Virus record (IMG/VR): IMGVR_UViG_3300010389_000001
Coordinates: 1-64,000 of that record
Strand: one strand, 5' to 3'
Length of the DNA stretch: 64,000 nt
The translations under genes and the position numbers were made by a program. Shown piece after piece: positions 3,894 to 53,026 of the stretch. Each line of letters starts with the position of its first letter. The stretch's first letter is position 1. Under the pieces are notes generated by a model that was not told the DNA's origin, searched no databases, and worked only from the letters and a program-made list of their open reading frames with translations.

Positions 3894-4071
3894 TGTCATA
3901 TAATTGTAAAAATTTGGTCAAATGTTTGTCAAGCAAATGTCAAGAGAATGTCAAGTGTCAAAAGGTTGTCAAGTGTTTGTAAAGTGTTTGTCAAAAGGTT
4001 GTAAAGCAAATGTCAAAAGTATGTCAAAGTTATGTGACGGGCTGTCACACATTTGTCACACGACTGTCACA
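3894..4071 (+). repeat. Array of 17 TGTCA-like pentamers at an 11-bp period (Pho-box-like)
   Basis: Units at 3894, 3905, 3916, 3927, 3938, 3949 / 3956, 3967, 3978, 3989, 4000, 4011, 4022, 4033 / 4043, 4054, 4065. Confidence 0.85.
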
Positions 4072-4078
4072 TAAGAAA

Positions 4079-4107
4079 TTGATCTCATATCCTAGTCCGG
4101 TTATATA
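4079..4107 (+). promoter_or_regulatory. First copy of the conserved phage promoter TTG-N5-TATCC-N6-GGTTATA
   Basis: TTGATC, 17-bp spacer, TATATA; the motif recurs before most early genes (5316, 5887, 6616, 7073, 8587, 9310, 10516, 11314, 12330, 12835, 15362, 15968, 17257 and later variants). Confidence 0.8.
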
Positions 4108-4153
4108 GTTGGCGAGGGGGCAACGCTTCACCCGCCCCGCTCTGGAGGTTCCC

Positions 4154-5074
4154 ATGGCCGTTGCATCCAAGCGTATCGTCGAGAACACCCTGGTCGCGAC
4201 CCTCGCGGCTCGCGGGTGGGCAGCAGGGGGTTCCCCCCTGGCCCAATCGTGGGCCACCGGTTGGGCGGCCCGTTGGGCCGTCGCTATCGAGGCGTCCTCC
4301 GAACGGGGGGAAGGCAAGTACAATTACACCCTGCTCGCCGAGCCCTTCAATTGCGGGCGTGGTATGCAGGTCTGGGATGCTGCATCCCCTAGCGGTCTCC
4401 TGCTGTCTATCAAGGGCAGTGCGAACCCGGACGCCATGCCGGGTACGGTCCACGTTACCACGGGGAAGCCCGTGGAGGGTGTTATCTCGGCGGCGCGCCG
4501 TGGAGCGCGCATCCCCATTGCCTTCGCTCGGGGCTACGTCGCGCCGGGCTCCGTTCCGGCCGGTACGGAGGGGGCTATCCGCCCCGCCGAAGGGGTGCAG
4601 GTCAAGGTGTTTGACCTGGGTCCTGCAATCCGTGCGTGCGCGGATATTCGAGTCCGTCGTGAGCGGGGGCACGGTGATACCGTGTATTTCGGGATCACCA
4701 GCGCGGGATACCGCGTTCTAAAGGTGAACCTGGCGCACCTCCGGCCCCTCACCGGGTGGCTGGACGCCGCCGGCCTGGACGCATGGGCGAGCGACCAGCC
4801 GGTGGGCTGGTCCAGGAAGGACCGGCACGCTGTCGCCCAAAAAGCCGGAGTCCGGTTGTTCACCAACCACCAGGTGCGCGTGGCCGGGCGCCACGTCTGC
4901 ACGCTTCAGCCGGAAGAGGCAGCCCTCCTTCGGCAGCTCCTCGACGCCCCCGAGGGCGAGTACGTCCGCTTCTGCCGAGTGCAGAAGAACAAGCTCGCTA
5001 ACAAGCTGCGCGGGCATGTGTCCATCCAGAGCAAGAGGAAGACTAAGAAGTGCGAAGGGGGCTACTACCTCTAG
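4154..5074 (+). CDS. Hypothetical protein with possible OmpR/PhoB-type winged-helix C-terminus
   Basis: GGAGGT RBS; C-terminal QVRVAGRHVCTLQPEEAALLRQLL...KLANKL...IQSKRK...GGYYL resembles Trans_reg_C, with a shortened central helix. Confidence 0.55.
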   Translation: MAVASKRIVENTLVATLAARGWAAGGSPLAQSWATGWAARWAVAIEASSERGEGKYNYTLLAEPFNCGRGMQVWDAASPSGLLLSIKGSANPDAMPGTVHVTTGKPVEGVISAARRGARIPIAFARGYVAPGSVPAGTEGAIRPAEGVQVKVFDLGPAIRACADIRVRRERGHGDTVYFGITSAGYRVLKVNLAHLRPLTGWLDAAGLDAWASDQPVGWSRKDRHAVAQKAGVRLFTNHQVRVAGRHVCTLQPEEAALLRQLLDAPEGEYVRFCRVQKNKLANKLRGHVSIQSKRKTKKCEGGYYL

Positions 5075-5099
5075 CCCCCGGGCGTCCTCACGCCCATAC

Positions 5100-5137
5100 G
5101 CCCATCGATCCCCCCGGGGGTCGGTGGGCTTTTTTTT
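5100..5137 (+). terminator. Rho-independent terminator
   Basis: GC-rich hairpin and T8 tract after the stop codon. Confidence 0.7.
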
Positions 5138-5366
5138 GTAAACATTTTGCCCCCCCATGGGGGCGTGTGTGCTCGCTCCCTACGGTCGCCGGGCAAACTG
5201 TTTACATAAGCAAGTGTCAAGAAAGGGTCAAGAAAGCTTGACGCTTGTGCGTATGCGGTTAGGGCTCCCTTTCTTTCGTTGGGGCAATCTGTTTACACAA
5301 GCATGTGAGCAAAAATTGATCTCTTATCCTAGTCGGGTTATATGGTAGTGTAAGAAGGAGCAAGCA

Positions 5367-5690
5367 ATGCAGCCTGAAGCCCCCCACACCCTTCCACACC
5401 CGCCTGCAGGCTGGGTGTGGGAATTCGAAACTTTCCCAAGCGGATGGGTCGAGGTAGACGGACTCGTGTCCGCGCTCGATGCCGATGGGCCGCGCGTGTC
5501 CATCTTCGAGCCGGGCGTCGACCCTGCCGAGGACCTCGATTGGGAAATTATCCTTAGCGCTTCGCGCGTGGACGCGGACGAGGAAAACAACCTCGCTCGC
5601 GAAGAGTTCCCCCGGGGGACCCCGCGCGAGGTGGTGCTGGCCTGCGCAGTGGAGCTAGCTCGCTCATTCGTGAGCCTTAGCCAGCCCTGA
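5367..5690 (+). CDS. Hypothetical early protein
   Basis: Conserved promoter at 5316 and AAGGAG RBS. Confidence 0.7.
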   Translation: MQPEAPHTLPHPPAGWVWEFETFPSGWVEVDGLVSALDADGPRVSIFEPGVDPAEDLDWEIILSASRVDADEENNLAREEFPRGTPREVVLACAVELARSFVSLSQP

Positions 5691-5934
5691 CGGCCCCCCC
5701 CGGGTAGCAAGAGCTACCCGGGGGCATTGTTCGCTCTGGAATTGTAAACATTTTGCCCGGGGCATCCAGCCCCCGTGACGGCCTCCGGTGGGCGGCTGGG
5801 CAATCTATTTACATAAGCATGTGATGCTTCGGGCAAAATAGTTACATAGAGTTACACGCGTGCGGGCAAACCATTTACAGAGATTATTGATCTCTTATCC
5901 TAGTCGGGTTATATAGAAGTGTAAGGAGGTTGCC

Positions 5935-6432
5935 ATGCTGAACACCCGAGAAACCCAGCCCACCCTGATTATCGTCAGGGGACTCCCGGGCGCGGGCAAG
6001 AGCACCATCGCCGAGGAATTCGGCGCGCCCGTGCGGGAAGCTGACAAGTTTCCCGGGCTCTACACGTACCACTCCGATGGGCGCGTGGAGTTCCACGGCA
6101 TGAGCCGCATCGAGGGGATGCCGATGATAGCCAGGGCTCACACCTGGTGTCAAAACCAGGTTCGCGAAGACTTGTCTCGGCTGCCGCCTGTGGCGGTCGT
6201 TGCGAATACTTTCACGCAGGGCTGGGAGTTTGCGCCCTACGTGGAGATTGCGAAGGCTGCGGGAGCCCGCATTGTTGTTATCGACGTGTTCGATTCGGGC
6301 TACACCGATGAGGAGTTGGCCGACCGGAACACCCATGGTGTTCCCGAGCACGTTATCGCCCGTATGCGGGCCAATTGGGAGACCGATTGGCGAGCCGCCG
6401 ACCCCCGGCCCCCTTGGGAGAGGGGAGAGTAG
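5935..6432 (+). CDS. P-loop kinase/ATPase (AAA_33-like)
   Basis: Walker A RGLPGAGKST; VVANTF and RNTHGVP motifs. Confidence 0.85.
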   Translation: MLNTRETQPTLIIVRGLPGAGKSTIAEEFGAPVREADKFPGLYTYHSDGRVEFHGMSRIEGMPMIARAHTWCQNQVREDLSRLPPVAVVANTFTQGWEFAPYVEIAKAAGARIVVIDVFDSGYTDEELADRNTHGVPEHVIARMRANWETDWRAADPRPPWERGE

Positions 6433-6663
6433 GAGCCGCCCCTCCGGGGGCAATCCATTTACATAAGTGTGTAAACATTTTGCCCGGGTCTTTGACTGGA
6501 GCTGGCCTCCCGCCGGGCAATCTATTTACATAAGCATGTTATGCTTCGGGCAAAATGGTTACACAAGTTATACAGGGTCTCGGGCAAAATGGTTACAAAA
6601 GCATGTGAGCAATAATTGCTCTCTTATCCTAGTCGGGTTATAGGGTAGTGTAAGGAGGTTACC

Positions 6664-6978
6664 ATGGGAAACAAGGTTGTGGTTAATAGCTGCTACGGCG
6701 GCTTCAATCTGTCCGAGGACGCGAAGCGGCTGTTCAATCAGATCCAGATTGACCGGCACCTGCCGGTCACGGATTGGGATGCGATCTGGGTGGGCGACAT
6801 CCCGAGGCACCACCCGATCCTGGTTCGGGTGGTGGAGCTGCTGGGCGAGAGGGCCGGAGAACGCTACTCCGATCTCCGGGTCGTGGAGATTCCTGGGAAT
6901 CAGTACCTGATTTCCGAGTATGATGGATTTGAGTCGATCCAGACTCCGGAGGGGATGAACTGGACCTTCATTGACTGA
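6664..6978 (+). CDS. Conserved phage hypothetical protein
   Basis: KVVVNSCYGGFNLS, RHHPILVRVVE, EYDGFE; own promoter and RBS. Confidence 0.75.
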   Translation: MGNKVVVNSCYGGFNLSEDAKRLFNQIQIDRHLPVTDWDAIWVGDIPRHHPILVRVVELLGERAGERYSDLRVVEIPGNQYLISEYDGFESIQTPEGMNWTFID

Positions 6979-7123
6979 GGGTCGCCCCTCCGGGGCAATC
7001 TATTTACATAAGTATGTAAACAGTTTGCCCGAGCATTCCTTGGGAGCCCAGGCAATCTATTTACTCAGATTATTGATCTCTTATCCTAGTCGGGTTATAG
7101 GATAGTGTGAAAAGGAGAAGGCA

Positions 7124-7348
7124 ATGCCCTACGCTGACGACGGACAACTCTACCGCGCGCGAATCAGTGAAATCCTCTCGCGCCTGAACGAGATGCGCGA
7201 TGCACAGCTCCAGCGCACGCTGGAGGCCGCTCGCAGCGGCAATATGGTTGATCCGACGGTGATCGAGTATGATCACCAGAGCGCCGTGTACGAGATGCTC
7301 GCGGACGCCATCCAGGTGGTGGTGGAGGTGGCCTACGCTCCCCGGTAG
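7124..7348 (+). CDS. Hypothetical early protein
   Basis: Promoter at 7073 and AGGAG RBS. Confidence 0.7.
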   Translation: MPYADDGQLYRARISEILSRLNEMRDAQLQRTLEAARSGNMVDPTVIEYDHQSAVYEMLADAIQVVVEVAYAPR

Positions 7349-7544
7349 GCCGGCGCTCCGTCTGGAGGCCCCTCGCGGGGCAATCTGTTTACATACTTAT
7401 GTAACTATTTTGCCCGAGGCAGCGTTGTGATATTCGGGCAATCTATTTACATAAGTGCTCTGCCTTGAAAAGCAAAATATTTACAGAGAAATTCATTGAC
7501 TCTCACAGCTCACCTTGTTATGATAATGAAGTAAGGAGGTTTCC

Positions 7545-7898
7545 ATGACTGATTACGCCGACCTTGTTTCTCAGGCCGACCGGGCGCGGGCAGACATCGC
7601 GCACCTTCATCAACTCCATCTTTGGGACGGGGTTGACGTGTCAGCGGCGCTGGCTATGGCAGAGAAGCATCTAGTATGGATTGAGGAGCAGCTCACCGCT
7701 GCTACCATCGAGGTCATTCATGACATCGGCACGGCCCGCTGGAAGGAGCTTCCGGTGCCCGAAGTCTACAGCCCCGAATGGGAGAAATATTCTGCCCTCT
7801 CGCAGAAGCTTGACTCTGCTCGCCGCTACCTCGCCCAGCTCCGGCAGCTCGGCTTCCCGGCAGTACGCTGGTACCACGCTCCCCGCTTCCATGGCTAG
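7545..7898 (+). CDS. Hypothetical early protein
   Basis: TAAGGAGGT RBS; TTGACT-type promoter upstream. Confidence 0.7.
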   Translation: MTDYADLVSQADRARADIAHLHQLHLWDGVDVSAALAMAEKHLVWIEEQLTAATIEVIHDIGTARWKELPVPEVYSPEWEKYSALSQKLDSARRYLAQLRQLGFPAVRWYHAPRFHG

Positions 7899-8073
7899 CG
7901 GGGGGTTTCCCAGAATTGTAAATGATTTGCCCCGGGACTCTGTCCCGGGCCCCGGCTTCCAGCCGGGCAATCTATTTACATAAATGCGCTCCTTTGAAAA
8001 GAAAAATATTTACAGAGAAATCTGTTGCCCCTTTTGGTCAGCTCTGTTATGTAAGTAGAGTAAGGAGGACACT

Positions 8074-8451
8074 ATGTCGGTTCACACTTTTGAATCCTTC
8101 GAACTCTTTCACCACCTTCCGGCGGATGCCCTCGCGGGCCTGCCATTCGCGGTGGCGGAGAAAATGGATTTGGATTTCGTCGAGTGGGGCGGCGTCCATG
8201 GCGAGATCAGCGCGAAGCGCCTCGCGGACGCTGGCATCGAGGATCTCTCTAAGTGGGAGGTTATCGGAGGCAAGCTCATCGACCACAGCGGTTGGTGTGA
8301 CTTCGAGCAGAAAATGGAGTTTCACTATGAGGATCTTCGGATCCTAGTGCGCAAGTCTCATCTCGCGGAAGCCCAGCGGGCTTTCTGCGATGGCCCAGCT
8401 CTGACCCATAATCCTTTTGCGGCCGCTCTCTCGAATCTTCGGGGAGGCTGA
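8074..8451 (+). CDS. Hypothetical early protein
   Basis: TAAGGAGG RBS. Confidence 0.7.
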   Translation: MSVHTFESFELFHHLPADALAGLPFAVAEKMDLDFVEWGGVHGEISAKRLADAGIEDLSKWEVIGGKLIDHSGWCDFEQKMEFHYEDLRILVRKSHLAEAQRAFCDGPALTHNPFAAALSNLRGG

Positions 8452-8639
8452 GGCCTCCGGCCGGGCAAATTATTTACTTAAGTGTGTAAATGGTTTGCCC
8501 GGGTCTTTGGCTAGAGCCGGCCTCCGGCCGGGCAAACCATTTACCGTAATCTGTATGGTGTTCGGGCAATCTATTTACAGAGATTATTGATCCCTTATCC
8601 TAGTCGGGTTATGAGGCAGTGTGAACCCAGGAGGACACC

Positions 8640-8846
8640 ATGGCACGCATCCGCACCACTTACCAGCCCACTCCCGGCGCCAGCGAGGACCAGGTCCTCC
8701 AAATCGCATTTCGGTGCGGCCGGGACCTCGACCCCGACGATCGCCGTGCGCGGTGGATCGATGCCCTCGATGGCGCAGCCTACACGGCTGCGGTGGAGGC
8801 CTACCATGCAGGCCAGGCCGAGGCCTATGAGTGTGAGGGCTGGTAG
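8640..8846 (+). CDS. Hypothetical early protein
   Basis: Promoter at 8587 and AGGAGG RBS. Confidence 0.65.
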   Translation: MARIRTTYQPTPGASEDQVLQIAFRCGRDLDPDDRRARWIDALDGAAYTAAVEAYHAGQAEAYECEGW

Positions 8847-8915
8847 CCACCGGCCCGGCCGGGCAAACTATTTACAGAGTAAACATTTTGTTTTGCAAAT
8901 AGTTTGCCCCGGGGC

Positions 8916-9125
8916 TCAGTCTCCCTTGACGGTGCCCCGACAAGCCTTCCGGCTTTGCTCCTTTCGAGCATCCCCGTGGGATCCGGCCCGTCCAGAGTTC
9001 CCGAGAATCATCCCGAGCACTTCGAGGTTCCGTCGAGCCGGGGCAATTTGTTTACCGTTTTCCATTGCCCTCCGACGGGCGCGAGCCTTCCGAGCCTTCC
9101 GACGTTGCTTGTTTGAGCGCGACAT
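8916..9125 (-). CDS. Small Arg-rich basic protein (inverted module)
   Basis: AGGAGGT RBS on the minus strand; MSRSNKQRRKARKARARRR. Confidence 0.6.
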   Translation of the reverse strand: MSRSNKQRRKARKARARRRAMENGKQIAPARRNLEVLGMILGNSGRAGSHGDARKEQSRKACRGTVKGD

Positions 9126-9362
9126 GGCTACCTCCTAAGGAGGATTAACACGATGAACCGGGAAGGCTAGGAGAAATATCATCCGGGCAAATTATTTACA
9201 AATCCTTATTCGGGTGTCGGGCAAACTATTTACAAAGGCGTGTCAAGGCTTCGGGCAAACTATTTACACAAGTTGCACAGGGCTTCGAACAAAATGTTTA
9301 CATAGAAAATTGATCTCTTATCCTAGTCCGGTTATGTAGTAGTGCCACGAAGGAGAAGTATC

Positions 9363-10265
9363 ATGGCTAAGGCATCGACCCTGATTGAAGAAACCGACGC
9401 CCGTATCGCGGAGGGCATCATCGCGAGCATCGATGACGCGGAAGCCCGTGGCGTCAAGTGGGTCCCCGGGTGGGACCGTTCGGCTGGGTTCCCCTCGAAC
9501 CCGGTTACGGGCCGCCAGTATGGCGGAAACTACAACGGGCTCGTGCTGCTGATTGCAGCATCGCAATTCGGCGACAGCCGGTTCGCTGGCCGTAGCCAGT
9601 GGCGAACCAAGGGGAATGTCATTCCCCGGGACACCATTGGGACGAAAATCTTCTTTCCCCGGTTTGTGTGCGTCAAGTGCAACAAGATCGCGGGATTCGC
9701 GAAGAAGTGCTCCGGTTGTGGAGCCCAATTCAAGCGATACACCGACAAGCGGTGCATCGGCTTTGGCGAGTCTGAGGTTTTCAACAATTTGCAAGGCGAA
9801 ACCCCGTTGCCCGAGGCCGGGTCCGATTGGGAAGTTACGTGCGAGGAAGCTCGCAAGATTGTGGAGAAGGCTGGCGCGGATGTCCGCCACGGCGGTGGGC
9901 GTGCGTTCTACTCCCCGAAGGAGGACCGTATTCAGCTTCCCGAGATGGCTTCCTTTCACGATGAAGCGGCCTACTGGGCCACGAGCTTGCACGAGCATGC
10001 ACACTGGACCGGCCATAAGACGCGGCTCGCCCGTCCTGGCATCGTCAACATGACGGGCTTTGGTTCGGCCGAGTACGCATACGAGGAGCTTGTGGCGGAA
10101 ATTTCCGCGAGCTTCCTGTGCAAGCATGCGGGTGTGCAGCGTGAGGGTCTTGACGACCAGCATGCTGCCTACCTCGCCAGCTGGCGAAAGGCTCTGAGCG
10201 ACGACCCTTCCATCATCCGCAAGGCAGCGGGGGAAGCTGGCAAGGTGCTCCGCTACCTGACCTGA
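9363..10265 (+). CDS. ardC: ArdC-like antirestriction/ssDNA-binding protein (DUF1738 plus zincin domain) with a Zn-ribbon insert
   Basis: NPVTGRQYGG.N, AFYSPKEDRIQLP, LHEHAHWTGH, YAYEELVAE, HAAYLASW; CxxC...CxxC insert. Confidence 0.88.
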   Translation: MAKASTLIEETDARIAEGIIASIDDAEARGVKWVPGWDRSAGFPSNPVTGRQYGGNYNGLVLLIAASQFGDSRFAGRSQWRTKGNVIPRDTIGTKIFFPRFVCVKCNKIAGFAKKCSGCGAQFKRYTDKRCIGFGESEVFNNLQGETPLPEAGSDWEVTCEEARKIVEKAGADVRHGGGRAFYSPKEDRIQLPEMASFHDEAAYWATSLHEHAHWTGHKTRLARPGIVNMTGFGSAEYAYEELVAEISASFLCKHAGVQREGLDDQHAAYLASWRKALSDDPSIIRKAAGEAGKVLRYLT

Positions 10266-10563
10266 TCTGCCCGGCCCCGGGAATTCCCGGGGCCTTTCGC
10301 GCTCGTGTGAATGTAAATATTTTGTTTGCCGGAAATGTAAATGATTTGCCCGGGGTCGTGCCCCGATCCGGCCTGCGGCCGGGGCAAAATGTTTACGTAA
10401 GTGTGTAAAAAGAGGGTAAATTTGTAGGCAAAGTATTTACACAGAGTCACTCACACGCAGGCAAATCATTTACATTCTCTTTGCCTTCCTTCGGGCAATC
10501 TATTTACATAGAAAATTGATCTCTTATCCTAGTTGGGTTATAGGGTAGTGTAGGGAGGTTCCG

Positions 10564-10764
10564 ATGGATTGGCAAAGGTTGATTGCTCTGGCGATGATTG
10601 CAGAGCAGGTTGATGCTTGGCTCACAGCTAAGGTTTGCCTGGCCTTCTTCCAAAAGAATGGCATGGAAATTTCTGAAGATATGTGGCAAGAAGCCGCAAA
10701 GCTGGATATGGAGCTAGAAGGAATGATGATGACGGCCGACGGCTGGATATCCGGGGAAGCGTGA
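10564..10764 (+). CDS. Hypothetical early protein
   Basis: Promoter at 10516 and GGAGGT RBS. Confidence 0.6.
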   Translation: MDWQRLIALAMIAEQVDAWLTAKVCLAFFQKNGMEISEDMWQEAAKLDMELEGMMMTADGWISGEA

Positions 10765-10895
10765 GAAACCTGGGTCGGGGGGAGAGGGTGACTCCCCCCG
10801 GCCTCTCACCGCTCTGTAAATTGTTTGCCCGGGCTTTCCCCATTTTTTATTGCGCTTTTTCTCTGAATCGGTTATCAGTCTTGTAGGAGGTAGCG

Positions 10896-11081
10896 ATGGA
10901 AAAGCATTCCACCCACATCCGGTGCGCGTTCTGCGGCTGGAAAGCACTCAAGTTCCGCAAGCTAAAGTCTGGAAAGACTCGCGGCCCGGATGCAGCCTTT
11001 CAGATGCTGTTTAACCATGCGGCCGCGCATCATCCGGAGCAATTTGACAAGGCTTTTCCCGACCGCTTTGAGGAGGAGTGA
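10896..11081 (+). CDS. Small C2H2-type zinc-binding protein
   Basis: CAFC...HAAAHH; AGGAGGT RBS. Confidence 0.55.
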   Translation: MEKHSTHIRCAFCGWKALKFRKLKSGKTRGPDAAFQMLFNHAAAHHPEQFDKAFPDRFEEE

Positions 11082-11381
11082 GTCGGGGGGTAAATTATTT
11101 ACACAAGCGTGTAAATAGATTGCCTGGATGGCTGATGGATATTGTGGCTTCATTCGGGCAATCTATTTACATAATTAGACCCAACCCTCTGGGCAATCTA
11201 TTTACATTGCCTTCCCATCGTTCGGGCAAAATAGTTACCTAATCCATTTCTCTCCCGGGGCAAACTGTTTACACAATCGCCTTGGTCCCCGGGCAAACTG
11301 TTTACATAGAAAATTGATCTCTTATCCTAGTCGGGTTATATGGTAGCGTGAGGGACGAACCCTCGCAGGAGGTAAACAACA

Positions 11382-11783
11382 ATGGCTAACATCTTCACCA
11401 CCGAGACCACCGAGAGCGCCGTCCAGAACATCAAGGGCACCATGCGCGTGTACCGCGACGACGACGGAGAGGCTTACGTCTCTTTTGCAACGAACAAGGG
11501 GAAGGGCAGCGGTGCCCAGGTTATCCCCGTCGCTGAATTCGCCGATTGCGTTGCAGCCTTGGCGGAAATTTCTTCCAACGGTCTGCCTGAAGTGGAGGAG
11601 GAAATCTCTACCTCCGAGTCGATTCGTCGCACGGCAGCTCTGTCCGATGGGGTTATTTCCTTCCGGGTTCGCTCCGGAAAGGGAGCTAAGCCTGCCAAGG
11701 TTTCCAGCGATGAACTTGCCGACGTGGTAAAGCTTCTCCAGGGAACCGTCAAGGCTGTGGAGAAAGCAGCGAAGGATCTCTAG
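11382..11783 (+). CDS. Tandem-domain GKG protein, paralog 1
   Basis: SFATNKGKGSGAQVIP and SFRVRSGKGAKPAKV internal repeat; paralogs at 17372 and 34141. Confidence 0.8.
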   Translation: MANIFTTETTESAVQNIKGTMRVYRDDDGEAYVSFATNKGKGSGAQVIPVAEFADCVAALAEISSNGLPEVEEEISTSESIRRTAALSDGVISFRVRSGKGAKPAKVSSDELADVVKLLQGTVKAVEKAAKDL

Positions 11784-12377
11784 AGCGAAGGCCCATGGCA
11801 CGCGGGCTAAAGCGTGCCGCCCCTTGGGGCGTATGCCTGAAATGTAAATAAATTGCCCGGGGAGGTGCGCGTGCTTGCAAACGTGCTGGACCTTTCTAAC
11901 GCTCATGTTCCGGGCCCAACTCCAAATTGGGGACGGGTGCGCGTGGTTGAGCATGAATTCGGATGGATTGTCTTTATCTCTGGTGACCTTGGAGATAGGG
12001 AGGCCCGTCGAACGGTTCCCGATTGGATGCTTGGAATTTGGAAGCATGCTGTAAATGAGGGCTGCATCGCTGTCATATTCGACAGAGACGCGGACGTGGA
12101 TGATCGTTTTCTGAAATTCAATTGGTGAGCTAATGGAAGGTCGGCGAAAGCCGAACTTCCTTTCTTTGTTTTCTGTAAACATTTTGCCTGAGCTTCTTTG
12201 TAAATATTTTGCCCGGGCTTGTGTGTTGGTATCCGGAAAGCAAGGGGATATTACTTATCAGGTAATATCCCCGGGCAAAACGTTTACTTAATTGGTGCGC
12301 ACACGCAGGCAAACTGTTTACTCAGAAAATTGCTCTCTTATCCTAGTTGGGTTATAGGGTAGCGTAAGGAGGTTGAG

Positions 12378-29974: not shown

Positions 29975-30047
29975 GGGCCTATAGCTCAATTGGCAGAGCA
30001 CCGGACTCTTAATCTGTAGGTTCCAGGTTCAAGCCCTGGTGGGCCCA
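29975..30047 (+). tRNA. tRNA-Lys (CUU), CCA not encoded
   Basis: Cloverleaf; loop CTCTTAA; GGTTCAAGCCC. Confidence 0.85.
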
Positions 30048-30633
30048 CTCCCCTCACTCAAGCGTACCTATCTCTATTAGCAAACTGGCTGGAGATTAAT
30101 TACCTTCTGCAAGGTTCGAATCCTCGCTGTGAAAAAGATAGGTTGAGGCTATAATATTTAAGACTATAAAATGGAAAAGTAAGGTGAGCCTGGGAAGGCT
30201 CTATCCAGCCTGAAAAATGCCATACAAATGGTCGCCTTTTAGATTATAGAAAAGCGTATGCTCACCACCAACATAGGGTCCGGACTACAGAGAGTGGCTT
30301 TCTCATAAGCCACTCTCTGTAAGACACCCGTGAGCGGGTCGCGCTAATGATGTTGGAAACTAGAGGGAAGTAGGGACTTCGTGCGCCCGAATAACAATAG
30401 ACGTTACTGCCTCGCTTAAATCCAGTACCTCTTATGGTGAAACAATCGGTTCCAGCTATAGCTGGCGTGAAATCTGGAGAGCGGTTATTGATCTTGGGAC
30501 CGCACCCCGCTGGCACACCGGGTAAAGTGTGCCAACCCAAAAATATGATAGTCATTCCTATTTTTTTGCGTATAATGTTTTTGCATTAATCTTGATGCCC
30601 CTTAGCTCAGCTTTGGTTAGAGCAGCGGACTGT

Positions 30634-43526: not shown

Positions 43527-43610
43527 GCTAGGGTGGCCGAGAGGTTGAAGGCACTAGATTTGTAATCTAGTTAGGAGACTACATCGCAGGTTCGAATCCT
43601 GTCCCTAGCT
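43527..43610 (+). tRNA. tRNA-Thr (UGU) with long variable arm
   Basis: GCTAGGG/CCCTAGC acceptor; CTAGA-TTTGTAA-TCTAG; ~15-nt variable region. Confidence 0.8.
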
Positions 43611-44418
43611 CTTTTTAAAACACTAAAGCTTGGTTGCTGTAATGCTCGATAAAGTTAATTGCAGAGAGTGCGGCGAAGAATACAATCCAAAGAGAGCGGC
43701 TCTTGGATACGCCACCTGCCTTAGTTGCGGTGATGCTAGCGCAAGAGAATTGGCAAGGCATCGCTCTCGCTGTTCTGCTCCAGCTTTCAATAAGGGTGCC
43801 TACCAACCTGTTATGAGCAAAGATGACGCAAAGTGGGTAGGGAAGTGACCGCAATAGATAAAGATCCAAATATTGCGTTGATGCAACTTGATAAAATAGA
43901 AGAAAAGATCAATATTCAGAAGAAATTGATTTCTTCTATAAGAAGCCAAATCCTACTTAAAAGAGATTTCGGTGTTTGCGTAAGCCAGATCGCTGGGCAG
44001 AAAAGAATGTTTAAAAAACAAATTGGATCTAGAAACTTATCTAAAACTGGATATGCCTTAATTCTTTTGAAGTGCGGAAAAGAAGTGAGGGTTCCAGATA
44101 GCCTGTTGGAATGGAATAATGAGTGAATCAACAAAGGAAATGATCGGCCTTATGCTAATGTCCTTTATGCTTTATTCTTTTAGCTTTGCTTATTTGTATT
44201 TTTACTGAGTGATCTATGGATATTGTCGGCGTTAAATTTAGGTTGCCTGGCATTTGGAGAATTAGAGATTTAGATATTCCGGTTACTATAGTTCAATATC
44301 TAGGCCCGAAAGACGGCGAAGACTGGTTTCTAATAGAATCAAAAGACGGCGAAGTTACTGGAGCACCAGCATCACAGTTGTTTGTAGATAAGTTTCCTCT
44401 ATCGGGAATAGAAAGCAA

Positions 44419-44901
44419 ATGCTAACCTTAGAGTCACTAAATCCAGATAAGCCTCTCTCTGTTTTTCTTGCGATTGGATTTTCAGAGAAGGCACTCCCGG
44501 TTTGGGAAAAAGAATATCCGAAGGATATGAGGCCGAGAAAAGCAATCGAAGCAGCTAAGGAATGGCTAAGCAATCCCTCTGCTGCTGCTGCTGCTGCTGC
44601 TAGGGCTGCTTATGCTGCTGCTTATGCTGCTGCTTCTGCTGCTGCTAATGATGCTGCTTATGCTGCTTATGCTGCTGCTAGGGCTGCTTCTGCTGCTGCT
44701 TATGCTGCTGTTTATGCTGCTAGGGCTTTAAAGGCAGATAAGGAAAGCTTAATCCACGAAGTAATCTTAGAAAACCTAGATTGGATTCTGCAATATAAGA
44801 TTGAGAATGGACAGAGTTTTGGAGATCCAGAGTTAATTTTTGATTACTTAACCGAAGAACAAAAGCAAAGATTTCTGTTTAATTTAGATGCGGTGGCCTA
44901 A
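44419..44901 (+). CDS. Imm5-like protein with Ala-rich repeat, paralog 2
   Basis: Flanks near-identical to 32379-32912, different repeat tract. Confidence 0.75.
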   Translation: MLTLESLNPDKPLSVFLAIGFSEKALPVWEKEYPKDMRPRKAIEAAKEWLSNPSAAAAAAARAAYAAAYAAASAAANDAAYAAYAAARAASAAAYAAVYAARALKADKESLIHEVILENLDWILQYKIENGQSFGDPELIFDYLTEEQKQRFLFNLDAVA

Positions 44902-45573: not shown

Positions 45574-46230
45574 TATTGTTCCAATATTAACCGCCTTGTG
45601 CAAGATAATGGTTTTCTTGCAGGCAGGTTGCCGCCAGGTTTTAGCTGGCTTTAAGCCTAACCCATAGATGCCTATTTACCTTTTGTGGACAGGATAATAA
45701 TCGTGCCTATCCTGTAAAAAAGGTGAACCGCTATAATGTGTGGCAACCTGGGAGGCTTGCATGGTTTTTCACCTTTCCATCAAAAGCCTGTTTGCTTTAT
45801 TTATTTTCGCGAGGTGAAACCTCTTGATCTCAGTCGAGGGTTAGTAACCGCATCGTAGGGTGGACTGCATGAGTTTGGTGACCAAAAAATATCAAACAGA
45901 GTGTGCAGGAGATTTTGTGCTTTCTGAAAAAGAAGCAGAGCATTTTCGTAGATTTAGCGCAGAGAACTACATTCTGCAATCAAACTTTGGTCTGATTCCA
46001 TTTGATCTATGGCACGAGAAAACGAAGAACAAAGAAGACCCGTTTGATGGAATGCCTGAAGAAGAGGCTCTTGCTGCCAGAAGAAAGTTTAGGAAGCTAA
46101 AAAAAATATTGGCAGCTATTCACGAGGTTCCATATAAAAGAGTATCATTCTCTGGGGTTCTTAGAAATTTTTGGATTTCTCGCACGAACTCTTACTTGAG
46201 AGATAAAGCGGGTCTATAAGAAGTTAATTA

Positions 46231-46307
46231 GCGGAAGTATCCCCTCGGCCTCCTAAGCTGTTGAAAGGGTAACTGGACACATGCGGGTTCGACTCCCGCC
46301 TTCCGCA
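46231..46307 (+). tRNA. Non-canonical tRNA-Arg(CCU)-like RNA lacking a D arm
   Basis: Perfect GCGGAAG/CTTCCGC acceptor, GCGGG-TTCGACT-CCCGC T arm, CGGC-CTCCTAA-GCTG arm; only ~8 nt between acceptor and anticodon arm. Confidence 0.6.
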
Positions 46308-47307: not shown

Positions 47308-48588
47308 ATGATTTTTAGATATGTTGACTTGGACGAAGGGGCAGAAATCGCTCTGTCAGCAAGAGTGGTTGGTTTCCGCAGAATGGGCAATGTCTCGTTC
47401 GGGCATATACAAGATGCTACAGGAAGAATTCAGTTTTGTATAAAGAAGAACTCTCTGCATAGTCCGTCTGAATACAAAGAGCTTGTAAAGTCTATAACAA
47501 ATGGCTGCTTCCTCTCCTTGGAGGGAAACATATGGTTTTCAAAGACTGGCGAGAAGACGGTCCTTGTAACCTCTGGAGCTATGCTTTCTAGGCCGGTTAC
47601 ACCAATGCCCTCTAAGTTCTATGGCATAGCGGACGAAGAGAGCCTAATTAGAAAGCGATACCTTCACACGGCGCTAGATGCTGATGCGGCATCGACCTTT
47701 CTTATCCGGTCAAAGGTAATAAGTATTATAAGAGAGTTCTTAACTTCGTCGGACTTTCTTGAGGTCGAGACTCCAATCTTATCTGCTCAGGCATCTGGAG
47801 CTATTGCCAGGCCCTTCATAACTCATCACAATGCATTGGATAAGGATTTTTACCTAAGGATTGCGCCAGAGACTTATCTAAAGATGATGACTGCAGGAGG
47901 ATTCAATAAAGTATTTGAGATTGGCAAGTCCTTTAGAAATGAAGGATTAGATCGGTCTCACGTTCAAGAGTTTACTTCTCTTGAGTGGTATTATGCTTTT
48001 GCTGATTACCAAAAGAATAAGCATTTATTTTCATCACTTATAGGCAGAGTGTTGAATGTCCTAGGTTTCGACGGAGGCTTAGTTCAGCGTGGCGACGTAA
48101 AGCTGGATTTTTCAAATATAGAAACGAAGAAGTATAGGGAATTGTTTGAGGAGTATGGTCTAAATGGCCCGGACTCCTATTCTTCGCAGGAAGCAGATGA
48201 TTTGTTCAAGAAGGTTATTAGGCCGAACATTATACAGCCTCTTTTTGTTGAAGATTATCCGGCTCATATGTCGCCTATGGCTGCAAGAAAGCCTAATGAT
48301 GAATCAACGGTAGAGCAGTGGCAGCTAATAGTGGACGGCTGGGAAATAGCCAAGTGTTATACCGAGCTTATTGATCCAGTCCTGCAGAGAAAACTCCTCG
48401 AAGATCAAATGCAACAAAGGGCCGAAGGAGATGAGGAGGCTATGATGATTGACGAAGCCTTCCTTGAGGCAATGGAATATGGTATGCCTCCACAGTCTGG
48501 TCTGGGCCTTGGCATAGATAGATTAGTTTGCTTGCTTGCAGATAAGCAAACCCTTAGGGATGTTATATATTTTCCGCTAACTAGGTGA
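47308..48588 (+). CDS. lysS: Class II lysyl-tRNA synthetase
   Basis: OB fold; FLEVETPIL, YLRIAPETYLK, FRNEG, YGMPPQSGLGLGIDRL. Confidence 0.93.
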   Translation: MIFRYVDLDEGAEIALSARVVGFRRMGNVSFGHIQDATGRIQFCIKKNSLHSPSEYKELVKSITNGCFLSLEGNIWFSKTGEKTVLVTSGAMLSRPVTPMPSKFYGIADEESLIRKRYLHTALDADAASTFLIRSKVISIIREFLTSSDFLEVETPILSAQASGAIARPFITHHNALDKDFYLRIAPETYLKMMTAGGFNKVFEIGKSFRNEGLDRSHVQEFTSLEWYYAFADYQKNKHLFSSLIGRVLNVLGFDGGLVQRGDVKLDFSNIETKKYRELFEEYGLNGPDSYSSQEADDLFKKVIRPNIIQPLFVEDYPAHMSPMAARKPNDESTVEQWQLIVDGWEIAKCYTELIDPVLQRKLLEDQMQQRAEGDEEAMMIDEAFLEAMEYGMPPQSGLGLGIDRLVCLLADKQTLRDVIYFPLTR

Positions 48589-52649: not shown

Positions 52650-53026
52650 GGGGGTGAATAGGTTTCGACGTGGCAATGAGCCTGGATAGTGCAAGCGGTC
52701 TGCGGCAACAAAAGACCTAAATAGTGTTGCAAAACTAATAATTGCCAACAACAATTATCACTACAACTCTGTCGCTCTAGCGGCTTAGTCGTCGGGGCTT
52801 CTAGTCGCCTTGTAACCAAAGGCTAGATAACAGGTAGATCCCTGCGAAAATAAAAAATCAAAATGGCTACCCTCGTTGTATGAGGTGGAGCGCAATAGGG
52901 CAGTGAGCGCTGGTTGGAAAATCTGTCTATCTTTGCTGATTTGTGATAGTAAATCGGACAAGCTTGTGAACGACTTGAATGGTTATTTGTTGCGGACGCG
53001 AGTTTCGATTCTCGCCACCTCCACCA
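52650..53026 (+). ncRNA. ssrA: tmRNA; tag peptide ANNNYHYNSVALAA (52744-52788)
   Basis: GGGGGTG...GGTTTCGAC 5' end, G3:U70 acceptor, TTCGATT T-loop, CCA, tag ending in ALAA. Confidence 0.93.

Follow-up and report, generated by a model that had tools for sequence, protein, structure and literature searches.

We find that positions 46231-46307 (+) of a giant marine phage contain a 77-base gene that most probably specifies a functional tRNA-Arg with anticodon CCU, reading AGG, in which the strands of the D arm are reconnected around the anticodon arm. We assign this reading a probability of about 0.75, since the secondary structure, the family to which the element belongs and the identity-linked positions are supported by comparative data, while the equivalence in three dimensions, aminoacylation and use on the ribosome are inferred. 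The element belongs to a large class of phage-borne Ile and Arg tRNAs that is almost entirely unannotated and is missed by standard tRNA finders. An earlier note, made from the sequence alone, had proposed a rewired tRNA fold in which the linker pairs with the region 3′ of the anticodon arm and a D loop with its GG, and hence the elbow contact, is supplied from the 3′ side, and this inference is supported by covariation and conservation across the family.

Structure and genomic setting of the element

The window, i.e. the whole stretch of 64,000 nucleotides that was analysed, is the first 64 kb of a 232.5-kb IMG/VR virus record judged 68% complete, with a GC content of about 42%. Numbering of the element below is n = window coordinate - 46230. 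It has a perfect 7-bp acceptor stem, a canonical T arm and an anticodon hairpin, but between the acceptor and the anticodon stem there are only 8 nt, TATCCCCT (8-15), and the anticodon hairpin is followed by a 22-nt stretch (31-52) containing AGGG-TA and then AACTGGA. ARAGORN finds seven tRNAs and a tmRNA in the window, but does not report this gene, and the Rfam tRNA model (RF00005) matches it only marginally, at 30.3 bits against a gathering score of 29, by treating the D arm as deleted and 18 nt as an insertion; no other Rfam family matches. Taken on its own, the fold is unremarkable (MFE -26.7 kcal/mol, z = -1.5), and a linker/variable-region match of 3-4 bp would be unconvincing, so that the case rests on the comparative evidence. 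The features of the element and of its surroundings are listed in the table.

Table. Coordinates of the rewired tRNA, its parts and neighbouring features in the window
Feature	Coordinates	Strand	Observations
Acceptor stem, 5′ strand, GCGGAAG (nt 1-7)	46231-46237	+	Pairs 7/7 with 46300-46306; all 7 pairs show compensatory changes in the family
U8 A9 U10 connector	46238-46240	+	U8 and A9 invariant in 89/89 members, U10 in 88/89; U8 inferred to pair with A41, the A14 equivalent
C11 C12 C13, 5′ strand of the D-stem-like helix (geometric equivalent of canonical 23-25)	46241-46243	+	Pairs with G39, G38, G37
C14 U15, 5′ side of the 2x6 internal loop (inferred equivalents of 26 and 27)	46244-46245	+	C14 invariant in 89/89, U15 in 86/89; U15 faces U31 (U·U in 191 of 207)
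Anticodon arm, 4-bp stem CGGC/GCTG and 7-nt loop CTCCTAA (nt 16-30)	46246-46260 (anticodon CCT at 46252-46254)	+	C32 U33 NNN A37 kept across the family; all four stem pairs covary
U31 U32 G33 A34 A35 A36, 3′ side of the internal loop	46261-46266	+	GAAA invariant in 89/89 when left unconstrained; inferred equivalent of the variable-loop nucleotides that dock on the D stem
G37 G38 G39, 3′ strand of the D-stem-like helix (geometric equivalent of canonical 10-12)	46267-46269	+	Same covariation as for 46241-46243
D-loop equivalent and link to the T stem, UAACUGGACACAU (nt 40-52)	46270-46282	+	U40, A41 (=A14), A42 (=R15), C43, U44, G45 G46 (=G18 G19), A47 (=A20), C48, A49, C50, A51, U52 (=Y48); U40, A41, G45, G46, C50 and A51 invariant
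T arm, stem GCGGG/CCCGC and loop TTCGACT (nt 53-69)	46283-46299	+	Canonical GGTTCRANYCC; three of the five stem pairs covary, two are invariant G-C
Acceptor stem, 3′ strand, CTTCCGC, and discriminator A77	46300-46307	+	No CCA encoded (next bases are CTC)
Block with GC of 0.53-0.61	4001-12000		Genome otherwise near 0.40-0.45; first 4 kb have 0.36-0.38
tRNA-Lys(CUU)	29975-30048
tRNA with threonine anticodon UGU, 85 nt	43527-43611	+	Long variable arm, GGCCGAGAGGTTGAAGGC-type D arm, discriminator U; Rfam 61.5 bits
Tandem genes for Imm5-like "immunity" proteins	44419-44901		Also at L001:836-1921 in the TARA relative
Class II lysyl-tRNA synthetase	47308-48588	+	Homologues of 50-76% identity
tmRNA	52650-53026	+	Tag peptide ANNNYHYNSVALAA; Rfam 110 bits

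The element lies on the coding strand, 11 nt after the stop codon of an ORF and 43 nt before the first ATG of the next ORF, and the window also carries dispersed tRNAs, a DNA ligase and a sigma factor. The lysyl-tRNA synthetase, which scores just under the NCBIfam cut-offs, has hundreds of homologues on contigs of 250-460 kb, i.e. it is widespread in huge phages, and the Imm5-like genes lie just upstream of the tRNA/LysRS region both in this phage and in its TARA relative. The tRNA at 43527 is called tRNA-Thr by ARAGORN although its body is that of a class II tRNA, a mismatch between body type and anticodon that is unexplained, while the high-GC block may be a foreign insert or an assembly join.

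Conservation, covariation and distribution of the family

Initial searches for relatives gave little: an exact 24-mer of the T arm and 3′ acceptor had no hit in viral contigs, back-translated searches with the two flanking small ORFs yielded no relatives, and megablast of 3 kb against GenBank phages gave no match. However, a TARA scaffold (L001), in which the synthetase is 75% identical and the neighbouring proteins overall are only about 58-76% identical, carries the element (L001:2249-2325) with 75/77 identity, the two changes being in unpaired positions 32 and 43, while blastn aligns nothing else in 1.9 kb and the neighbouring ORF is 58% identical in protein. A closer strain contig in a marine run has 17 substitutions in 873 nt, none of them inside the element, although the two metatranscriptome runs of the same study gave no contig over it, which may not be informative given that standard RNA-seq rarely captures tRNAs. 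The same marine run holds an abundant contig with a different acceptor stem (CCGCGAG/CTCGCGG), a different anticodon stem (CAAG/CTTG) and anticodon UAU, but the same linker, and this showed that the element is a family rather than a single oddity. In contrast, in a sister lineage (loci L005:2815-2841 and L006:1727-1753) the 5′ 50 nt have been lost and only the 3′ 25-27 nt survive, comprising the T arm and the 3′ acceptor strand, next to the same downstream flank as in L001 and with an upstream ORF 52% identical to window 45860-46219, so that the tRNA is dispensable there.

A scan with the core pattern found 116 stretches, where about two would be expected by a rough estimate, and gave 86 distinct sequences, counting the element and its TARA relative. 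Two further scans, in which position 12 or 13 was forced to differ from C while its presumed partner was left as N, found 119 and 32 stretches, respectively, and position-11 variants were recovered from paralogues and from Streptomyces phages. Together these give 207 distinct sequences with at least 6/7 acceptor, 3/4 anticodon-stem and 4/5 T-stem pairs, with the Ile-type anticodons UAU (135), GAU (31) and CAU (5), the Arg anticodons UCU (17), CCU (10), UCG (5) and ACG (3), and a single UAC. Positions 11-14 and 36-39 occur in the combinations CCCC/AGGG (84), CUCC/AGAG (67), CCGC/ACGG (16), CGCC/AGCG (9), CCUC/AAGG (8), ACCC/AGGU (6), CCAC/AUGG (6), CACC/AGUG (5), CUCC/AGGG (4) and AGAC/AUCU (1), with one non-pairing outlier. 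As the partner base was unconstrained, this is a fair test, and it proves the pairs 11-39, 12-38 and 13-37, with eight compensatory variants and compensatory changes at all three pairs; the register is not the C12-G39...U15-A36 register of the single-sequence MFE fold. On an alignment of 150 sequences, this helix is paired in 450 of 450 cells, and the whole structure is 98.4% paired, compared with 65.8% in shuffles and 36-46% when partners are slid; the acceptor, anticodon-stem and T-stem percentages are inflated by the filter, but the helix 11-13/37-39 and the pair 42-52 were not filtered. RNAalifold returns the same structure unaided. It should be noted that the family was collected with patterns derived from the element itself, so that parts of its apparent invariance are by design, with only the tests brought forward here as evidence being free of this, and that the sequences are related, so that the counts overstate the number of independent events.

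The stretch 3′ of the helix behaves as a D loop. R42, two bases after the helix, covaries with Y52, just before the T stem (A-U 154, G-C 45, other 8 of 207), with both states occurring in several helix classes, which is the pattern of the canonical 15-48 Levitt pair. In an additional scan, anchored only on the UAU anticodon loop, the D-loop-like motif and the T loop, with positions 1-19 and 27-40 left free, 89 of 90 distinct hits had the whole architecture, providing the invariance counts out of 89 given in the table. The base after the GG is A in all 35 Arg-anticodon members and U in 170 of 171 Ile members, and it shows the strongest non-helical covariation in the molecule, with anticodon position 35 (MI between 23 and 47 is 0.61). 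The discriminator is A in all Ile members and A or G in 30/35 Arg members. This matches the published arginine identity set of A20, C35, U/G36 and A/G73, with A20 contacted directly by ArgRS (PMC9976931), and, since Arg and Ile types coexist in seven helix classes, it is not one inherited event. The anticodons are single-base neighbours of one another (UAU-UCU-CCU/UCG, UAU-GAU/CAU), which fits a lineage that spread by anticodon shifts plus the switch at 20, although this last point is inference.

Moreover, CCA lies directly after the discriminator in 40 of 205 members, against about three expected (binomial p = 3e-31), and occurs at offsets +1, +2 and +3 only 1, 1 and 0 times. Ordinary tRNAs are present nearby in 234 of 262 loci, and in the crAss-like Bacteroides phage Kehishuvirus tikkala the element fills a 90-nt gap between annotated tRNA-Trp and tRNA-Met. 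In the phage studied here, AGG makes up 24% of Arg codons (12.2 per 1000) and AGA 46%, while the record has a canonical tRNA-Arg(UCU) but no other CCU tRNA. A family model (R1) scores the element at 92.1 bits (E = 3.5e-23) and ordinary tRNAs of the same genome at 26.6 or less, and finds no second member in the record; in 100 loci its hits score 74-98 bits, and nothing else passes E ≤ 1e-6.

Members are seldom recognised: ARAGORN misses 274 of 278 copies, and the Rfam tRNA model reports 1 of 12 tested at E ≤ 0.01. One pattern scan of 185,579 species genomes gave 35 stretches, of which 27 are true members, almost all on MAG contigs; the eight loci inspected hold between 1 and 23 other tRNA genes, five of them 15 or more, and one has a tmRNA. 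As in the window, a tmRNA sits in the tRNA array that includes a rewired tRNA-Arg(CCG) in Achromobacter anxifer LMG 26857. Cultured carriers, in addition to K. tikkala, comprise about 77 Streptomyces BE-cluster phages with an Ile-GAU copy near 75 kb, a subset of which (e.g. Yaboi, Stanimal, TomSawyer) also have an Arg-CCU copy near 91 kb. Their records leave the gene blank, label the Ile-GAU member tRNA-Leu (UUA), as in phage EGole (MK494112 75265-75341; L128:295-371 in our set of loci), or, as in TomSawyer, JimJam and Enygma (MN369750, ON970590, PP358745, near 92-94 kb), annotate protein genes (HNH endonuclease, endonuclease VII) over the Arg-type member. Phage tRNA repertoires are therefore undercounted, especially for AUA and AGR decoders, and studies of codon-usage matching are affected. 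Some phages carry two rewired tRNAs side by side, for example GAU + UAU or ACG + UCG (loci L270:4447-4606, L219:2687-2845, L211:5154-5318 and L107:3788-4041), so that the class has diversified by local duplication.

Inferred topology and alternative readings

We infer that the D/anticodon domain is circularly permuted while the canonical tertiary core is kept. The strand after U8-A9 (U10 to C14) would run straight down into the anticodon stem, as canonical 22-26 does, and the strand leaving the anticodon stem would return, after the GAAA bulge, as G37 G38 G39 U40, pairing with C13 C12 C11 (U10) as canonical 10-13 does, before continuing into a normal D-loop sequence (A14, R15, Y16, G18 G19, N20) and reaching the T stem through C-A-Y48. 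The covalent links 9→10, 21→22 and 44→45 are thus replaced by 9→22, 44→10 and 21→48, which is reachable in principle by tandem duplication and loss of the ends. The helix 11-13/37-39 would stack coaxially on the anticodon stem, and the stack up to the U8·A14 level still has ten layers: four Watson-Crick pairs, U15·U31, the C14 layer, three Watson-Crick pairs, and U10·U40. The GAAA bulges out exactly where nucleotides 45-48 leave the stack in a normal tRNA, and may replace their groove contacts. The mapping is not perfect, as the 11-24-equivalent pair is R-Y (G38-C12), whereas bacterial elongator tRNAs usually have Y11-R24, and an alternative mapping exists (C strand = 10-13); in addition, the anticodon stem has only four Watson-Crick pairs, topped by U·U. 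The partners of the tertiary pairs U8·A14, R15·Y48, and G18/G19 with the T loop are all present, and the molecule should therefore still form an L, be matured at both ends, receive CCA, be charged by ArgRS (A20, C35, U36, A73) and decode AGG. The suggestion in the earlier note of a functional AGG decoder is supported indirectly, by the identity elements, the in-register CCA of relatives, codon usage and the absence of a canonical CCU tRNA, and function as a charged decoder is likely but unproven.

Alternative readings account for the data less well. Decay into a pseudogene, or an attP-type fragment, could be suspected from the ARAGORN and Rfam results and from the true remnant in the sister lineage, but is refuted by the 97% conservation against diverged flanks, by more than 200 relatives with compensatory changes in every helix, and by the two perfectly paired acceptor strands, in agreement with the argument of the earlier note that intact stems speak against simple decay; a class II variable arm is likewise rejected, as no hairpin can form in 31-52. 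It is unlikely that the element is a tRNA mimic not used in translation, such as a decoy soaking up host anticodon nucleases or other tRNA-binding defence proteins, or a regulatory or processing element. Its architecture departs from every tRNA known to work on bacterial ribosomes, it is dispensable in one lineage, no expression or charging data exist, and phage tRNA arrays are probably arenas of defence and counter-defence; yet a decoy would not need A20 to switch with C35, a discriminator that follows the amino-acid class, or an in-register CCA, and the anticodon set is restricted to codons the phages use heavily, with the elements occupying isoacceptor slots in tRNA arrays.

Equally doubtful is a floppy D-armless molecule of the mitochondrial kind, with a long anticodon helix, a single-stranded connector and no canonical core, in which the resemblance of 41-52 to a D loop reflects only synthetase contacts. 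D-armless tRNAs do function in mitochondria (PMC7609411), and the Y11-R24 rule is not met under the permutation mapping, but those tRNAs have lost G18/G19 and the conserved T loop, whereas here G45, G46, GGTTCRA, U8 and A41 are conserved, R42-Y52 covaries as a Levitt pair does, and the ten-layer stack length is preserved exactly. Cutting and re-ligation of a precursor into a canonical tRNA would predict the same helix and Levitt covariation, and some phages may encode RNA ligases, but this is very improbable, as swapping two adjacent internal segments needs three cuts and three ligations, which circularisation plus one cut, the known route, cannot achieve. No bulge-helix-bulge motifs are present, and within ±3 kb of 206 elements no universal protein partner was found: the largest cluster is an HNH endonuclease near 47 elements, and the others have no Pfam match or are unrelated (Cpn10-like, ThyX). 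The rewiring might represent an adaptation in the phage-host conflict over tRNAs, which would keep these molecules usable by synthetases, EF-Tu and ribosomes but invisible to host tRNA-cleaving defence or toxin nucleases, or to the phage's own host-tRNA-degrading enzymes, giving the phage a private supply of decoders for AUA, AGA and AGG, the codons it depends on most. This possibility, in line with the nuclease resistance suggested in the earlier note, is not excluded, but remains speculation and is considered unlikely.

Comparison with known systems

No description of this architecture was found in the open literature searched, including the main review and the main survey of non-canonical tRNAs, although an earlier description elsewhere cannot be excluded. 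tRNA architecture is among the most conserved in biology, and outside mitochondria the known natural exceptions change stem lengths or add arms, not connectivity; if the class proves functional, it would show that the L-shape tolerates a different chain topology. With canonical class I bacterial and phage tRNAs (RF00005), e.g. tRNA-Arg(CCU), the element shares the 7-bp acceptor stem, the 5-bp T stem with GGTTCRANYCC, the 7-nt anticodon loop with U33 and A37, U8, A14, R15/Y48, G18 G19, A20 for Arg, a discriminator, a length of about 77 nt and location in phage tRNA arrays. It differs in having no D hairpin between positions 9 and 26 and no 44-48 variable loop leading to the T stem, in that the two D-stem strands flank the anticodon arm and the D loop lies 3′ of it, and in its anticodon stem of four Watson-Crick pairs plus U·U.

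D-armless mitochondrial tRNAs, such as mammalian mt-tRNA-Ser(AGY) and nematode mt-tRNA-Ser (PMC7609411, PMC4013460), also lack a D hairpin in the usual place, have a short connector joining the acceptor and anticodon stems and, by coincidence, read AGN codons, but they have lost the D-loop/T-loop elbow nucleotides and are flexible, while the phage family keeps a D-stem-like helix, a full D-loop sequence and a canonical T loop, and occurs in phages of bacteria with standard translation machinery. The circularly permuted tRNA genes of Cyanidioschyzon merolae and relatives (PMC3978253) share a permutation of tRNA segments at the gene level, but there the whole gene is permuted, with the 3′ half before the 5′ half, and processing through a circular intermediate restores a canonical mature tRNA, whereas here the acceptor strands are in the normal order, only the internal 10-44 domain is permuted, and the permutation is expected to persist in the mature RNA. 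Finally, the allo-tRNAs and the (8/4) and (9/3) tRNAs from metagenomes and phages (Mukai et al. 2017, PMC5389517) are likewise non-canonical tRNAs found in bacteria and phages by sequence mining, with UAU as one of the predominant anticodons there as well; they change the lengths of the acceptor and T stems and carry long variable arms but keep the D arm in its normal place, while the family described here keeps the 7/5 arrangement and rewires the D domain.
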